A DNA stretch of 63,520 nt, filler included, from Octopus bimaculoides (Eukaryota), in assembly GCF_001194135.2 (NCBI RefSeq). It is 6 parts of 6 records of this genome, joined end to end, with 100 filler letters (N's around TTAATTAATTAA, not from the genome) between each part and the next. Parts side by side here need not be neighbours in the genome. Positions count along the whole stretch, not along the records: positions 38,004 to 57,832 come from NC_069007.1; 5 more parts are not named here. One strand, given 5' to 3'. The position numbers were made by a program, and so were the translations under genes. Each line of letters opens with the position of its first letter. Within the stretch, counting starts at the first letter, position 1. This document shows positions 38,004-57,832 of the stretch, one piece after another. Below the pieces are notes generated by a model. That model had not been told where the DNA came from and ran no database searches. It worked only from the letters and a program-made list of their open reading frames with translations.

Positions 38004-38778
38004 GAGAGAGAGGGAAGAGGGGTATGGGGGGAGAAAGGGAGGAAGAGAAAGAGAGTGAGAGAGAGGGGAAGAGAGTGAGAGAGTAAGGGTGAGAGAGTAA
38101 GAGAGTAAGAGAGTAAGGGTGAGAGAGTATGAGAGAGTAAGAGTGTAGATAGTAGGAGAGTAAGAGTGTAGAGAGTAAGAGTTAGAGAGGGGGGAGTATG
38201 AGAGAAGAGAGTGAGAGAGAGTAAGAGAGAGGAGAGAAAGAGTAGGGGTGAAGAGAAGTATGTAAAAGTAATTACGATTTAGTTAGTCCAGTATTATCCG
38301 CACGGCTCGAAGTAAGGCGAATATAATCAAAATTAATAACAGGATATCAAGTAGTAGTGCAGTACAACCATTTCAAGCGGCTCCATTTAATTGAATAATC
38401 CAATCATTACATCAATTTAAATACACTGCTATAATCAGCTGCAAAGCAATTATGGAATTTCAACAGACAAGTTATATTAATATAATTTTTTTAAATGTAC
38501 TGTCAGAGCTAGAGGTTGAAAAATTTCATGTTAGCACTATTGCAGCAAAAACCAATTACAATTTAATACTGGCAAGGGACTAACACTCTAAAATTGTGGT
38601 TAGAGTACTTGGCATATTTTCCTCCATAACTGTCAACTCTGAAGAGCACAGTGTTACATAATCGGGCTCTTATCTATCATCCTATTGAGTCCCTGGTGTG
38701 AAACTAGTTGATAAGATCAACTGCAATGGATATATAATACTATACGATTTGATTAATCCACACACAGAGTAGGGGTTT

Positions 38779-38815
<37 letters not shown>

Positions 38816-38887
38816 TATATTCATTAAAAGAAGAAATCAAAATTGACATTAGGAAGTTAATAATTGTTTATTATTAACAATAAGTGC

Positions 38888-39235
38888 AGGAGTGACTGTG
38901 TAGTAAGTAGCTTGCTTACCAACCACATATTCCTGGGTTCAGTCCCACTGCGTGGCACCTTGGTCAAGTTTCTTCTACTATACCCTTGGACCAACCAAAG
39001 CCTTGTGAGTGGATTTGGTAGACAGAAACTGAAAGAAGCCTGCTGTATATATATATATGTGTGTGTTTGTGTGTCTGTTTTTGTCCCACCACCATCGCTT
39101 GACAACCGATGCTGGTGTGATTACGTTCCCATAACTTAGCGGTTCGGCAAAAGAAACCGATAGAATGAGCTCGACTGAAGGCGGTGCTCCAGCATGGCCA
39201 CAGTCAAATGATTGAAGCAAATAAAAGTCAAAGAA
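38888..39235 (+). mobile_element. SINE family A, full length
   Basis: Same head, spacer and tail. Confidence 0.85.
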
Positions 39236-49822: not shown

Positions 49823-50809
49823 AGTGAAATTATTGGAAATGAACTCAAAGACTATAACGTTAAAATTAAATCTGGATACAGTACAAGTGTTCTTAATTTC
49901 AAGCATCCTATTGAACGTGGTATTATTACCAACTCGGATGAGATGGAGAAGATTTGGCTGCATGCATTCAAAGAGTTGAAAGTTGCACCTGCGGAAAGTT
50001 CTGTCTTGTTGACTGAGGCTGTTTTTAACTCCAAGGACAACAGAGAAAAGATGGCCGAAATTGTGTTTGAAAAGTTTAACACTCACGCATTATGCATTGC
50101 TGATCAGGCTTTACTGTCCCTCTTTGCTTCTGGTCGTATCACAGGTATGTCTGTGAATGTCGGTCATGGCATCACCCAAATTGTTCCTGTCTCTAGAGGG
50201 TCAATTATACGAGACGCTGCTGTCCAGTGGGAGTTTGGTGGTCAGGACATGACAGATTACCTTACGAGGATGTTGATTCAATGTGGCTATTCCTTTGACA
50301 GTCATTCTCAAACGGAAACTGTCTGTAACATCAAAGAGAAGTGCTGTTATGTTGCTCCAGACTTTGAACAGGAATTGCAGACTACAGCCTCTGAGAAATA
50401 TAAATTACCTGACAAACAAGTCATTAGCATTGGCAATGAATGATTCCGAACCCCGGAACTTATGTTCCAGCCAAGTTTAACTGGTGAAGAGTCTCAGAGT
50501 ATTCATGAAAGAATTCGTAAATCAATCATCAAATGTAATTGGTGGGTTAAACGGTCCCTATTTAAGAACATTGTATTGTCCGGTGGCTCTACAATATTCA
50601 GAGGCTTTTCCCAGCGCCTAAAAAAGGAAATGAGTTCCATTCTGGCACCTACCACAATATTTCAGATTATTGATTATGAAGAACGTAAATATGGTACATG
50701 GCTTGGTGGTGCCGCATTGGCTTCTCTGTCTACCTTTAAAGATCAGTGGATTAGCAGAGAAGAATATGATGAACATGGCTCAAATATTCTCGATAAAAAA
50801 TATATGTAA
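49823..50809 (+). CDS. Exon 2 of the actin-like gene, with one in-frame TGA at 50441-50443
   Basis: Acceptor tttgtatttcAG at 49821-49822, in frame with ORFs 49943..50443 and 50462..50809. Actin motifs: HPIERGIITNSDEMEKIW, VLLTEA, QALLSLFASGRITG, IKEKCCYVA, LPDKQVISIGNE*FRTPELMFQPS, IVLSGGST, ERKYGTWLGGAALASLSTFKDQWISREEYDEHG. Confidence 0.93.
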
Positions 50810-50823
50810 TATGTATGTGTCAT

Positions 50824-50860
<37 letters not shown>

Positions 50861-51359
50861 GAATATAAATCCCATTCTGTGTGTGTGTGGATGTGTGTAA
50901 AAGATTATAACGGCTGTATTGTTCAACTGATTTTCTCCAAACTGGGAACATACATTACTTATGTTCCAGGGATGGTTTTAGACTCTTAAAATTTTTCACA
51001 TAATGAGTAATGGGACCCCTGAGAGCAGCAAACATCCTTTCTTGAGTTACATGGAGAAGGGAGGTAACCCTTTGCGAAGTAACTTTTAGAAACTGATTGG
51101 GTCCTTTACATCCATTGATCAAAAAATTACCACAACCTCATCTAATATATAAAATAGAGATGTGTGTGTGTATTCGCTTTTCACACGAAAACAGCTTCAC
51201 CAATTGCTTCCATACTTGTGATGTATGAATAATTTGACCTTGGATACATATTAGGATCTTCATTTGATTTTTTATTTTAAAAAAATTGCTTTTTATATTA
51301 GATTCACGTCTTTGAAAGTTTTTTTTAAATATTTACTTCCGGTTTTCTAGCGTCAGTGA

Positions 51360-51552
51360 CATCTATATCTCTCTATCTATGTCTCTCTATCCATCTATCT
51401 CTATGTTTCTATATCTCTCTATCTATATCTTTCTATCCATCTCTATCTTTCTCTCTATCTATCTATCTGTCTATATCTTTCTATCCATCTCTATCTTTCT
51501 CTCTATCTATCTATCNNNNNNNNNNTTATCTATCTATCTATCTGTCTATATC

Positions 51553-51592
<40 letters not shown>

Positions 51593-51600
51593 ATCTATCT
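51360..51600. repeat. (TATC)n degenerate microsatellite
   Basis: Read directly from the sequence. Confidence 0.93.
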
Positions 51601-51619
51601 TATTTGTCTAACTAGCTAG

Positions 51620-53136
51620 CTCTCTCTATATATCTTACTCATTCTCTATTGTTTTCATTTTCATTTTTTAGACCCTATTGTTTTCACTTCAAGTCCAATT
51701 GCTATTGTTTTTACCGTATGTTTTCAATCGCTATTTACAAACAACAATGACAAATTACTGACAGAAAGAGGTTCACAATTACTGATGAAAGCAATTTCAT
51801 GCATAATTAACTGACAGAAGTAACTTCATATATTTCACTTCTATCCATACACTTCGTTAAATTTGCCTAAATTTACTTTTTCAATGTTTTGTGTTTTTTT
51901 GTTGTTGATTGAATTACTGAAAAAAGTAAGTTCATAATTTGCTGACAGAAGTAACTTAAAAAATTTTACTTAAATCCGCACACTTAGTTAATTTCCCTAA
52001 AAAATGTCTTATTTACTTTTGCAACAGCTTTTTCCTAGTTCCTTCGATACTGGGACTTTGGTTCACTGAGAAATTTCACTTCAACCTGTACAATACTTTA
52101 TTTTCAGTAAAAATTTCTTATTTACTTTCTGCCTGTCATATTAAGAAATATAATTTCCGTTACCCATTCATTTTCATTGTTTACTATCTTCTACACCTGT
52201 GTATTTCGGTATCTGTATCAAACCATGCCTAGAAGGAAAGTGTCAAATTTATTTACAATGTCAAGGTTAGCCAAAAGAATGTTTCTCTCCAGGGAGAGAG
52301 AGACAGCTGCAGAAAGGGAAGCATACCAAGAAACTAACAGACTGTGCACTACAAAAGCCAGAGCATCTCAAAGTGATGAACAGGTGTATGAATGGATGAC
52401 AGAGAATAGGATACCCACTGCATAACAAAGAGCAGTTGCAACAGCTCAGTGAAGTAACTTCTATGAAGCAGCTTTCAATTATGTTCCAGCAGTTCATTAT
52501 GCAGATGACACTAGCGTTTCTATTGGTGCAATGACAACTGAGTGCATACATTGTAAAGCAAGGAAGTGGCCTGGAGAGACACTTGCACTATACTGCAGTG
52601 GTGCAAAGGTTAAACTCCCTGCAACACCCCCAACCTCCAGAGCCACTGAAGAAACTGTTGTCATCAACTAACCGAGATTCCAAGCACTTCCAAAAACAAA
52701 ATTAGACAATACAACGCTGCACTACAGATAATATCATTTGGAACCATAAGAGATTTAACTGAGCCAGGATTCATGCAAACTTTCAAGATCCGAAGTCAGA
52801 TTTATCAACAGATTGGCTCTCTACTACCTCTGTTTATTGAATCACTAAAATCAGCTTTTCATTGATTATAATCTGTACCTGTTTTTTGGTTACGAAATAA
52901 GCTACACAAAACGTGTTTTTGAATTATGTGTATTTACTTTAGATACATATATGAGTTAAAAACTTTCTTTTAACATTTCATTTAACGTCTATGTTCCATG
53001 CTGGCATGGATTGGAGAGTTATTAATATAGAAAGTTAGAATTGCAGCTGCCAGCAGTTAAGACCGACGTGAACTAACCGGCATTTCTAAATTTCATTATT
53101 CTCTTTAACCCAGGCAAAGCTGGGTATTTATGCTAG
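51620..53136 (+). mobile_element. Internally deleted Helitron with decayed RepHel N-terminus (about 52225-52832); 5' end approximate
   Basis: IGAMTTECIHCKARKWPGE...KVKLP..PPEPLKKLL...IRQYNAALQIISFG...GFMQTFKIRSQIYQQIGSLLP. 3' hairpin cccag-gcaaag-ctggg (53109-53124), then CTAG (53133-53136) followed by T. Confidence 0.85.
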
Positions 53137-53660
53137 TATATATATATATATATATATATNNNNNNNNNNNNNNNNNNNNNNNNNNNNNNNNNNNNNNNNN
53201 NNNNNNNNNNNNNNNNNNNNNNNNNNNNNNNNNNNNNNNNNNNNNNNNNNNNNNNNNNNNNNNNNNNNNNNNNNNNNNNNNNNNNNNNNNNNNNNNNNNN
53301 NNNNNNNNNNNNNNNNNNNNNNNNNNNNNNNNNNNNNNNNNNNNNNNNNNNNNNNNNNNNNNNNNNNNNNNNNNNNNNNNNNNNNNNNNNNNNNNNNNNN
53401 NNNNNNNNNNNNNNNNNNNNNNNNNNNNNNNNNNNNNNNNNNNNNNNNNNNNNNNNNNNNNNNNNNNNNNNNNNNNNNNNNNNNNNNNNNNNNNNNNNNN
53501 NNNNNNNNNNNNNNNNNNNNNNNNNNNNNNNNNNNNNNNNNNNNNNNTATATAATATGTATATATATATGGCAAGTGTCAAGGCCAGTGTTAGTTGTTTA
53601 CTACTAAACTTTCAGATCCTCAGTGACAATCACCAGGGGATATTAAGGAACACCTACTAA

Positions 53661-53938
53661 CCCTTTCAATATCAATCTGCCTGAGACAAACCCCTGCTTC
53701 TATGATAAAGTGAGTTCCATTCAAAACTTCCATGTTAATTTATGTTCAAAACACCAGCATCATAGCGACAAATTCTTATTTTGAAAATTAATTTCAAGAA
53801 AACCATTTCGTTTTATCAGAAATATGGCAACAAAAGTGATAATAAAAATAACGAATTATTTTACGAAATTCTTCCTTATTTTCAAAATTAACTGAAACAG
53901 AGTTAAGGTATTACAATAGAAATATGGTAACGAAAGGG
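53661..53938. mobile_element. piggyBac-type MITE
   Basis: CTAA|CCCTTTC ... GAAAGGG|TTAA (one TSD base changed). Confidence 0.7.
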
Positions 53939-56254
53939 TTAATAATGCCATGGTAATTTTACTAAATTCTTCATTATTTTCATATTCTAAAAGAAATATG
54001 TTAATAAATGTTTTAAGTTAGTATTCGCATATTCTGTCTACAATATTCCAATCTAGAACCTATTTTCACTATTATAAGTTTGTTATTAACGGTAACATAA
54101 TGTTGTCCTAAACTGCCATGTAATCATAAAATTTTACTAAAAATTGCTTTTTGTGAGATCTGAAATTTAATAAAGAACTTTTTTAAAAAAATACTGGTCT
54201 GTTGTTTTTGATGAACTTTTAAGAACGTTATTGACTACAGCCAAACTGTAATGTCTTATAAGTGAGTGAGTGAGTGGGTGAGTGTGAGTGTAAGTATGTA
54301 TGTTGGTGTGAGCGAGCAAGAATATCTGCACTTGTGTGTGTGAAAGTGAGTCAGGGTGGGGTGTATGTGTGTTTGTGCTGTGTACACACCTGTATGTCCT
54401 GGTATACAGGTGATGCAGCCCTTGAAACTGCTGGCTACTTGAGCTTTGATGTAAGAGGCAGAAAGCTGCTGCATCAAGAATTTCTTTATCCAAGGAGTGA
54501 GCATAACATTTATGGTAAGATTGGTCTCAATGGTAACCCTCAGACCGAAGGAGTCAAGTGAGTGAAGAAAGAGATGGCTAATGCATCTTCCATACATAGA
54601 CCAAAGTGGGTTGATGGGAACTGCTCAGTTAAGGTGTCAAGTATATATAACCTTATGAGGTAACAAATATGTATGTCGTTGAATGCTCCCATCATCCTGC
54701 CAAAGGAACCTTCTGGGTCAAGTTGTTCAGCCCAGGTTGAACTTTAATCACACAGCAGGCATTTTCTGCTGTCTTTTATTATCTCTATGTTCCTATCACT
54801 AACATCAATGATCTCCTTCATGAAATTAAGTGCCCCTTTGACTCAGATGGGTAAAAGTCCATTATATCAAATTGGGGGAACTGTGCCCTGCCTTTCCTTC
54901 TCGTTTTAGTTCTTTTTTCACCACCAAACAGAACAACACAGCATATTTACCTCCTCCATTAAAGAGGCTCTGTGTTTCTGGCCAGAAGGTCTGAGAATTG
55001 TGTATGTTATCAGATGTAATAGTAGACATGGAACCAATGGTAGCTTTCTGACCATTAATATGCCATAACCAAAGATGTACTTTTTAACTACAAAAAAGTA
55101 GAACTTCACAAAGTTTTTTGCTGTTGTTCATTTTATATTTTTATGCATTTATTTACTCCATCATTCATCTATTTCTACATTTAAATTCCATTGGTTCCAA
55201 AGTTCATTTATCTGCTGTTTTGTTTTCTACCCCCCGCCCCTTACTCCCACTTCATCTTTCTTGTTCTACTATTCATTTGTAAATTACTAAATTAGTTAGT
55301 CAATTGCAAGTTTCCCTTTGCATTCTTTGATCATTCTGTCCATCCTACTTCATTCTCTCCTCTTAATATATTCCCTTTATTTTCTCTTCTTCTCACTCTC
55401 TTCTTTCTCCTGATTTATTCCTTTTCTCATTTTTATTTTCTTTTCTGTTTTCTTCCTTTCTTCCCTTTTTTTAAATTTCTTTCTTTTTCTTTATTCAATT
55501 TCTTCTTTGTTGTTTTTTTCTTCTTTTTTGCTGTTTTATCATAACATTTTCCTCCACCAGCTCACCCAATAAATAGCAAACTACATATAGATCTGGAAAT
55601 CCCATCAATTTTCAGTCCCAATTTGCCTCATAATACTCTGCTCCAACAGATGAAGCTCAGAGTAGCAAGAGACTGCTAAGACCAAAAAGAAATACATTGT
55701 ACAGAAAAAATCCTTACCATGGAGTACCATCCAACATTCTCACTTGAAACTGCTAAAGGATCTTACCTGTAACATTATTATTTATTAATTTTGGAACTGC
55801 ATTATGTTACCTATTTTACTCTGATCCTTCCTTCATTTTCGACAAAGTGGAATACACTAATATCCTCAAATGGGGATATTTCTTTATTTTTATATCTCTC
55901 TGACTTCCGCCTCTCTGTTGACAAAATACTCAGCTTATGGAATCCATACTCAATATCATGACCCACATGCTTGGCTATTCTAGAAACAGCCGTAAGAAAC
56001 TCTATCTGTTTATACTTTCCATCTAAATTAAAAGGTTTTTTTTAATATTTTTTGAGGGAGCCAGCATGCTTTGCATTTTCATTTTTCATTTTAATCTATA
56101 TCTACCCACTCAAAGAGAAACCACTTCTAGCTGCCTTCATTAGGCAGTGTCAACACGACATTCTTTAGTTGCAATTCAAGCCAGAATTTTGGTGGTAAAC
56201 CAAACTGAACACTCATAGTACATGCCTGTGATATTATGTCAGTTGACAAAAACT

Positions 56255-56700
56255 CCTTGTATTTGCTGTATATATCTCTCAGAATGAAAGACAGCTTGTA
56301 TGATGCCTGTGTGCGAACAGCTATGCTACATGGCAGTGAAACAGGGACTGTGGTAGCTGCGGACATGCATAGCCATGAAAGAAATGAAATCAGTAGGCTT
56401 CACTGGATGTGCAATGTCAGTGTGCATGTTTGACAGAGTGTAAGCATCTTGAGAGAAAAGTTGGGCATAAGAGCCATCAGATGTGGCATGCAAGAGAGAT
56501 GCCTATCCTGGTATGGTGATGCATATGGATAAGGACAGCTGTGTAAAGAAATGCCGATCCCGAACTGTGGAGGAAACCTGTGATAGAAGTAGACCCAGGA
56601 AGACATGATCTCTGAAGTCACATAGCAATGACTACTGACCAAGACCATTGGCAATATGTTGAGCTTGAGAAGTCCTGTCAAGCCAAGCGAAATTGTAGTC
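56255..56700 (+). mobile_element. RTE LINE RT C-terminal fragment
   Basis: LYDACVRTAMLHGSETG...ERNEISRLHWMCNVSVHV. Confidence 0.85.
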
Positions 56701-56778
56701 GTGGCTGATGCTGGAGATTAACCATTGGAATATCTTGGATTATACAATCCCTAATGAGGATATAACTTCCTTGAATTG

Positions 56779-56822
<44 letters not shown>

Positions 56823-57149
56823 GTATGTGTATTTTTTCAATGTGCACAACTAACACAGAAAAAATAAATAGTTAACAGGGTAGCAAAAATTCACATAGGT
56901 GCCAAGCAGATTACAGCCTACTTATAAATGTAGGGTTTAGTGAAATGTTTCAGTCTATCATAGCTAATTTAAGAAATGGGGTTAAATGCAGTTAAACACT
57001 TATTGATGTGTTTATTTCTCTTTTTTCCCCTGACAAGATGATTACATTGTTATACATCATTTTATTCCCTCAGGAATAATACCAATGTTTTCTTCGAAAC
57101 ATATGTCGGAACTATAAAGATTTGAATAACATAACTATAAAGATTTGAA

Positions 57150-57290
57150 GGGCATCCAGCTGTAGAAACTCTGCCAAATCAGATTGGAGCCTGGTGTAGA
57201 CATTTGGATCACCAGTCCTCAGTCAAATCGTCCAACCCATGCTAGCATGGAAAGCGGACGTTAAATGATGAAAATGATGATGATGATGAT
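57150..57290 (+). mobile_element. RTE LINE extreme 3' end
   Basis: gggcatccagctgtagaaactctgcc...ggaaagcggacgttaaatgatg. Confidence 0.8.
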
Positions 57291-57574
57291 ATATATAATG
57301 TGTAATTGTAAGATCCAAAGATCTAGATATAATAAGTTAGTAAGCTTCGAATGATCCATAGAAGATATAAAAAGCAACTACCAGGAACAATAATAATCTA
57401 TTGGCACAGAAGGATGTAGCTTTTTCCCATATAGAAATTTGGTAAGCTAAGAAAGTTATTTTATGGTTTGCAGTTAGCATCTATGGGTTGCTATGTATGC
57501 AAATAAAAATCCTTTTATTTACATACCTGCTCCATTCCCTCAGTTCGGATTTTTATTCACTCTAGATGCTTACC

Positions 57575-57740
57575 AGTGACTATATCACGGAGTGTTTGGT
57601 GTTAGGAAGGGCATCCAGCTGTAGAAACTCTGCCAGATCATATTGGAGCCTGGTGAAGCCATCTGGTTCACCAGTCCTCAGTCAAATTGTCCAACCCATG
57701 CTAGCATGGAAAGCGGACGTTAAACGATGATGATGATATG
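57575..57740 (+). mobile_element. RTE LINE extreme 3' end
   Basis: Same terminal motif with gatgatgat tail. Confidence 0.8.
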
Positions 57741-57801
57741 TATAAACGTGTATATGTGTGCATGTATGTATGTATGTATGTGTGTTTGTATATATATATA
57801 T

Positions 57802-57832
<31 letters not shown>

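Follow-up and report, generated by a model that had tools for sequence, protein, structure and literature searches.

Two-exon actin-like gene with an internal TGA

The window is a stretch of 63,520 nucleotides of Octopus bimaculoides DNA, and the piece studied here occupies its positions 38004-57832, with a G+C content of 35% and several N gaps. We compared this piece with sequence CM046627.1 of assembly GCA_001194135.2 and found 19,829 of 19,829 positions to be identical. A coordinate on CM046627.1 equals the window coordinate plus 9,798,025, and window positions 50441 and 50443 are 9,848,466 and 9,848,468 on that sequence. The base call at the TGA described below comes from this one O. bimaculoides assembly. 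The v2 chromosome assembly was obtained by re-scaffolding the 2015 shotgun assembly with Hi-C (PMC9068888).

On the plus strand of the piece lies a two-exon actin-like gene, whose features are collected in Table 1. Direct reading confirmed what the sequence-only reading had reported, namely that exon 1 and exon 2 are joined across a GT-AG intron into 366 codons with one stop at codon 245. The TGA at this codon is the sole internal in-frame stop of the gene. The exon 1 sequence is the same as exon 1 of the RefSeq model XP_014767996.1, 'actin, cytoplasmic 2-like', in which the gene ends at the TGA and the product has 244 aa. The intron includes one of the assembly gaps as well as copies of a SINE-like interspersed repeat, and its position is the same in O. 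sinensis, O. vulgaris and the O. bimaculoides paralogue. We also considered whether the gene is a processed pseudogene (retrocopy) and rejected this, as a 6.6-kb GT-AG intron is kept.

Table 1. Positions of the gene, its lesions and neighbouring features along the window.
Feature	Position	Strand	Description
Exon 1	43094..43207	+	ATG and 37 further codons (MAVKVPSVVIDNGSYTCKVGLGCDDEPRIAISSDPRDQ); last codon CAG; ends at the actin codon 41/42 intron position
Private in-frame deletion	junction 43193/43194	+	9 nt (3 codons); from DNA alignment; protein alignment SSD---PRDQ
Intron	43208..49822	+	phase 0, 6615 nt; GT at 43208-43209, AG at 49821-49822
Exon 2	49823..50809	+	329 codons including TAA; equivalent to actin residues 42-375; 50% identity to beta-actin
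Phosphate-binding loop 2	about 50150-50180		SVNVGHGITQ
Gene-conversion tract with P0006	50198..50416	+	codons 164-236; partner XP_014767973.1, exon 2 in L003
In-frame TGA	50441..50443	+	codon 245 of 366, ..ISIGNE*FRTPE..; replaces Arg CGA (actin Arg254)
Peptide after the stop	within codons 246-366		FRTPELMFQPSLTGEESQSIHER
ATG-started ORF, 115 aa	50462..50809	+	C-terminal part of the same actin-like frame; separate protein entry P0121
Terminal TAA	50807..50809	+	position shared with O. sinensis orthologues (..ILDKKYM*)
(TA)n microsatellite	50826-50858		begins 17 nt past the terminal TAA
Degenerate (TATC)n array	51366-51635		long; about 550 nt downstream; broken by an N gap
SINE-like repeat core	44854-44883, 48383-48412, 48483-48512	+	CAGCTGGATGCCCTTCC.AAC.CCAACCAC; the three intronic copies
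SINE-like repeat core	57592-57621	-	fourth copy; chance expectation for the core, 0 copies
Assembly gaps	39883-40127, 42385-42394, 47282-47790, 51516-51525, 53160-53547		

In a tblastn comparison with beta-actin, the TGA was aligned with Arg254, the arginine of GNERFR, which is the residue that had been assigned to this position at the outset. The Pfam Actin profile (PF00022) matched residues 4-365 with E=1.6e-100 and 337 bits against a cut-off of 27. With an X placed at the stop, this match spans profile positions 3-409 of 410 and runs across the stop, and the terminal TAA stands at the orthologue position. The earlier statement that actin motifs continue to a normal C-terminus was thus borne out. 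In random sequence of the same composition, the chance of finding the 121 codons from 246 to 366 open is p ~2e-4. Since so long an open run is improbable by chance, we regard the frame downstream of the stop as preserved coding sequence. The separate listing of the 115-aa tail as a protein of its own is an annotation artefact of the stop. A protein search with 112 residues spanning the stop returned only this same-contig ORF and two unrelated ENA fragments.

Relatives, ancestral codon and constraint

In a protein search, close relatives of the gene were found in Octopus only, and all other matches had at most 50% identity. The identities were 79% for XP_029652464.2 (P0001) and 73% for P0002, both from O. 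sinensis, 65% for P0008 from O. vulgaris, and 64% for the O. bimaculoides paralogue XP_014767973.1 (P0006). Arg occupies the position of codon 245 in 7 of 7 intact relatives from O. sinensis, O. vulgaris and O. bimaculoides, and also in conventional actins; XP_029652589.1 (P0124) of O. sinensis and CAI9741787.1 (P0125) of O. vulgaris are among the sequences with Arg at the stop position. We read the codon at the DNA level in five relatives. Four of these have CGA, namely O. sinensis copies A, B and C together with P0008 of O. vulgaris; the fifth, P0006, has AGA. The flanking codons, GGC AAT GAA before the site and TTC after it, are shared, and P0006 reads AGA CTC. From this distribution of CGA and AGA, the TGA is a C>T transition at a CpG, in agreement with the CGA>TGA change assumed before any related species had been compared. 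A CpG transition could produce a stop at just three CGA codons of the gene, namely 168, 245 and 247.

The distribution of residues at this site also bears on whether the UGA could be a selenocysteine codon. Apart from the codon being UGA, nothing speaks for this reading. The homologues carry Arg and not Cys or Sec, and we know of no selenoproteins among the actins. A SECIS element in the 3' region, which the sequence-only reading had proposed to look for, was not found; an Rfam scan of 49800-53100 on both strands gave no SECIS match at E<=10, and no Rfam family came near its gathering score. The probability that the codon specifies selenocysteine is therefore vanishingly small.

Conventional actins typically show more than 85-90% identity to metazoan actins and have the loops DNGSG and DSGDG and a histidine at position 161. 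The gene studied here has half of its residues in common with beta-actin, the loops DNGSY and NVGHG, and the replacement H161Q; these departures extend across the family, and we rejected its classification as a conventional actin. The earlier label 'actin-like' holds, with the adjustment that the gene is a fast-evolving paralogue at 50% identity with altered nucleotide-binding loops. Judged on these comparisons, the RefSeq name 'actin, cytoplasmic 2-like' overstates its similarity to actin. We noticed that in all Octopus family members phosphate-binding loop 2 is changed from DSGDG to (N/D/S)VGHG, together with H161Q and G15Y/H. These replacements suggest that ATP hydrolysis may be altered or lost across the Octopus actin-like family. 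Literature searches on the octopus actin-like family found nothing specific.

We next consider constraint. Within the family, pairwise omega by the Nei-Gojobori method (NG86) was 0.5-1.0, which far exceeds the values usual for conventional actins. The constraint on the family is weak and its evolution fast. The sequence-only reading had proposed that dN/dS be compared before and after the stop. In comparison with copies A and B of O. sinensis, the codons preceding the stop gave an omega of 0.47-0.53 and those following it 0.58-0.74 (Fisher p=0.38). On the terminal branch, by parsimony and with the conversion tract excluded, nonsynonymous and synonymous changes numbered 7 and 6 before the stop and 9 and 3 after it (p=0.41). 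Neither comparison gave a significant difference. Downstream of the stop, the intact O. sinensis branch has 12/4 where this branch has 9/3 (Fisher p=1.0), a comparison of small counts with low power. The C-terminal third evolves fast in both lineages. The dN/dS values fit a very young lesion and a still-translated frame equally well, and they give no positive support for pseudogene status.

The gene had been described as otherwise intact. This stands for the frame, the splice sites and the terminal TAA, but not for the coding sequence as a whole, which has a private 9-nt deletion and seven private replacements. The 9 nt are kept in 4 of 4 aligned paralogues and orthologues, and the lost residues align near actin 34-37 (actin IVGR), at the end of exon 1. 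The replacements, W79S, M123V, Y166S, R210C, T249S, G273S and I289V, fall at sites that are invariant in eight other sequences including conventional actins. W79S, Y166S and R210C are radical changes, and R210C is a second CpG transition in the gene. The intact paralogue P0006 has 11 replacements at invariant sites, compared with 7 here. As P0006 carries a similar number, these replacements are better ascribed to weak constraint across the family than to an old decay peculiar to this copy.

Tandem cluster, gene conversion and age of the lesion

The gene is a member of a tandem cluster of actin-like genes, in which P0006 lies about 25 kb downstream in O. bimaculoides. The O. sinensis cluster comprises at least three intact copies, with a fourth actin gene adjacent. 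The cluster also contains dead copies. One of them, in O. bimaculoides (L001:3-330, CM046627.1 ~9,831,121-9,831,450), precedes exon 1 by 10 kb and falls beyond the piece; it reads TAA in frame (ITINK*RF) at the codon adjacent to the one mutated in our gene and has lost ~55 codons. This upstream fragment, which represents the 3' part only, is closer to conventional actin, with 66% identity over its length. In O. vulgaris, a copy beside the intact P0008 (L004:7121-8061, OX597840.1) is interrupted by a stop (GSIK*DAAV) and is also frameshifted; this broken copy is nevertheless annotated as a 323-aa protein. The cluster shows birth-and-death dynamics, and nonsense mutations are commonplace in gene families of this kind.

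Sliding windows of 30 codons revealed a tract of gene conversion with P0006, in which identity between the two O. bimaculoides copies is 98-99% in the core and 92-94% at the edges, compared with 56-88% elsewhere in the exon. Derived residues in the tract (IQCG, H, P, L, T) are common to both copies but absent from the orthologue of either, and the radical shared changes are TERG>IQCG, P>H and L>P. The tract stops 25 nt 5' of the TGA. A related pattern was observed in O. sinensis, where dS between copies B and C (L002:1879-2868 and L005:13655-14644) rises from 0.02 in the first two thirds of exon 2 to 0.5 in the last third. From this step in dS, the B/C pair is a second conversion mosaic, a sign of concerted evolution in O. 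sinensis as well, with a breakpoint near the O. bimaculoides one.

So close a paralogue tract raises the question of whether the TGA is a consensus or assembly error, the animal really having CGA and an intact gene. The locus comes from a draft Illumina assembly with many gaps, and a tract 98-99% identical to a paralogue and ending so near the site could favour mis-assembly. However, P0006 reads AGA CTC at the site and not TGA TTC, so a chimeric consensus with this known, nearest paralogue cannot yield, and does not explain, the TGA. Per-base consensus error rates are very low in deep Illumina assemblies, and merely ~4.6% of random single-base errors in the coding sequence would create a stop, whereas genuine disabling mutations are common in the cluster. 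Because stop-making errors are rare among errors that are themselves rare, and disabling mutations are frequent in this cluster, an assembly error is improbable a priori, and we consider it very unlikely.

The age of the lesion can be bounded from the remaining coding sequence. The 1098 nt contain no second disabling lesion, and neither the frame nor the splice sites nor the terminal stop is damaged. With ~4.6% of point changes in the coding sequence making a stop, and frameshifting indels assumed to arise at 5-15% of the substitution rate, a rough calculation gives a 95% upper bound of about 0.016-0.03 for the neutral divergence accumulated after inactivation. The synonymous divergence of the lineage is ~0.06 (12 synonymous changes). 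Compared with this value, the bound suggests that the lesion is young relative to the O. sinensis/vulgaris split.

We consider it very probable that the TGA is a genuine, recent loss-of-function mutation without recoding, the gene being a young pseudogene or a null allele. In the proposed sequence of events, a germline C>T change at a CpG would have turned the CGA of actin Arg254 into TGA in one copy of a tandem, fast-evolving and Octopus-restricted group. With ordinary termination at the UGA, translation would then yield 244 residues and leave the last third of the actin fold unmade; such a copy would be a loss-of-function allele of recent origin, on its way to becoming a pseudogene. Three points are inferences: the lack of function of the truncated product, the recent date of the event, and the absence of recoding. 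The lesion may still segregate as a null allele and not yet be a fixed pseudogene. The ancestral CGA, the dead copies in the cluster and recoding features that were searched for and not found agree with the ranking given by the sequence-only reading, in which pseudogenisation or a null allele was the simplest explanation and recoding the least likely.

If this loss-of-function reading is right, the locus adds one more case of birth-and-death evolution, with CpG decay and gene conversion shaping a lineage-specific octopus actin-like cluster. XP_014767996.1 would be the truncated product of a probable pseudogene and unsuitable as an actin sequence. Apart from the stop, the family itself may merit study, given that it was Octopus-restricted in our search and has ~50% identity to actin, an altered loop 2, H161Q and a high omega.

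Recoding, short products and comparison with known systems

A different fate for the UGA would be conditional rescue, in which readthrough, or A-to-I editing that turns UGA into the Trp codon UGG, gives the full-length protein in some tissues. The UGA would then be a regulated switch, and the locus a lineage-specific conditional octopus gene encoding a divergent actin-like protein. Coleoids edit their mRNA heavily, and coleoid transcriptome pipelines list stop-loss editing of UAG to UGG among their classes (PMC8382921). Stop-loss editing is also found in fungi, as in Fusarium PUK1, where UAG is changed to UGG (PMC4817773). In the octopus gene, the frame downstream of the stop is still open, and the mRNA, with its stop in the last exon, should escape EJC-dependent NMD.

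The sequence context argues against such a rescue. ADAR favours a 5' U or A and a 3' G next to its target, and a 5' G and a 3' U are the least favoured neighbours. The target A at 50443 lies in the context G-A-U, which is the worst for ADAR. Direct reading of G-A-U and UGA-UUC upheld the earlier remarks that the 5' G is disfavoured and that the stop is not in the classic readthrough context. We searched for a duplex at the site: a 300-nt fold was no better than its shuffles (z=+0.31), and an inverted-repeat search found no partner covering 50430-50455. The neighbours and the duplex expected of an ADAR target are therefore both missing here. The stop-loss class named in the coleoid work is UAG, whereas the stop here is UGA (PMC8382921). 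Moreover, the edited codon would specify Trp where all relatives have Arg, and Arg254Trp is pathogenic in human gamma-actin (PMC8776155).

Readthrough meets similar objections. The stop is absent from all seven intact relatives, so it is no conserved regulatory feature, and programmed readthrough is marked by a conserved stop in a UGA-C or UGA-CUAG context, followed by coding sequence under constraint, compared with a private stop in UGA-UUC here. To our knowledge, neither UGA-U nor UGA-UUC is a leaky readthrough context. We thus regard rescue of the full-length protein, by editing or by readthrough, as highly unlikely. In an informal inspection, splicing out of the stop was also considered and rejected; no in-frame mini-intron is evident, and losing this conserved segment would destroy the fold.

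It is likewise highly unlikely, to about the same degree, that a new functional product has arisen in the form of the 244-aa truncated protein or of the 115-aa ORF after the stop. RefSeq does model the 244-aa protein, and its mRNA would probably escape NMD. However, the C-terminal third of the Pfam Actin domain is lost in the truncated protein, and with it the LSGGST adenosine-binding loop and the conserved ERKY..W.GG..LASL segment, and a truncation at this place occurs in no relative across three species.

Turning to known systems, the octopus stop resembles the editable stops of Fusarium PUK1 and of coleoids in being an in-frame stop within an open, conserved frame in a heavy-ADAR organism (PMC4817773, PMC8382921). 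It differs from them in being UGA and not UAG, in having the worst neighbours and no predicted duplex, and in descending from Arg and not from Trp.

A second likeness is found at the level of the mutation. Human ACTG1 (gamma-actin) p.Arg254Trp (c.760C>T) is a listed Baraitser-Winter mutation (PMC8776155). In p.Arg254Trp and p.Arg210Cys, human ACTG1 is changed at the same two Arg codons as the octopus gene, by the same C>T change at CpG (PMC8776155). At Arg254, the human change is CGG to TGG (Trp), whereas the octopus change is CGA to TGA (stop). Human ACTG1 is a conventional, highly constrained actin, unlike the octopus gene.

As a family, the octopus genes can be compared with ACTL7A/B, ACTL9 and ACTRT1-3, the divergent, lineage-specific testis actin-like proteins of mammals. 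Both groups have the actin fold (PF00022), ~50% identity to actin and fast evolution. The octopus family differs in that every copy keeps the codon-41/42 intron, and it therefore arose by DNA duplication and not by retroposition. It also differs in being confined to Octopus in our search and in its replacements H161Q and DSGDG>NVGHG (DSGDG being the conventional loop), which are peculiar to the octopus family.

The gene itself has the marks of a non-processed pseudogene: its intron structure is kept, it is a paralogue of intact genes, and it has a single TGA where relatives have CGA. Compared with duplicated pseudogenes made by CpG nonsense mutation, it stands apart in having one disabling lesion, and relaxation beyond the high omega of its family is not measurable. 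In the other respects the likeness is close. The gene is a tandem paralogue with its intron kept, the change is CGA>TGA, conversion has taken place between copies, and neighbouring octopus copies bear stops, a frameshift and a deletion.
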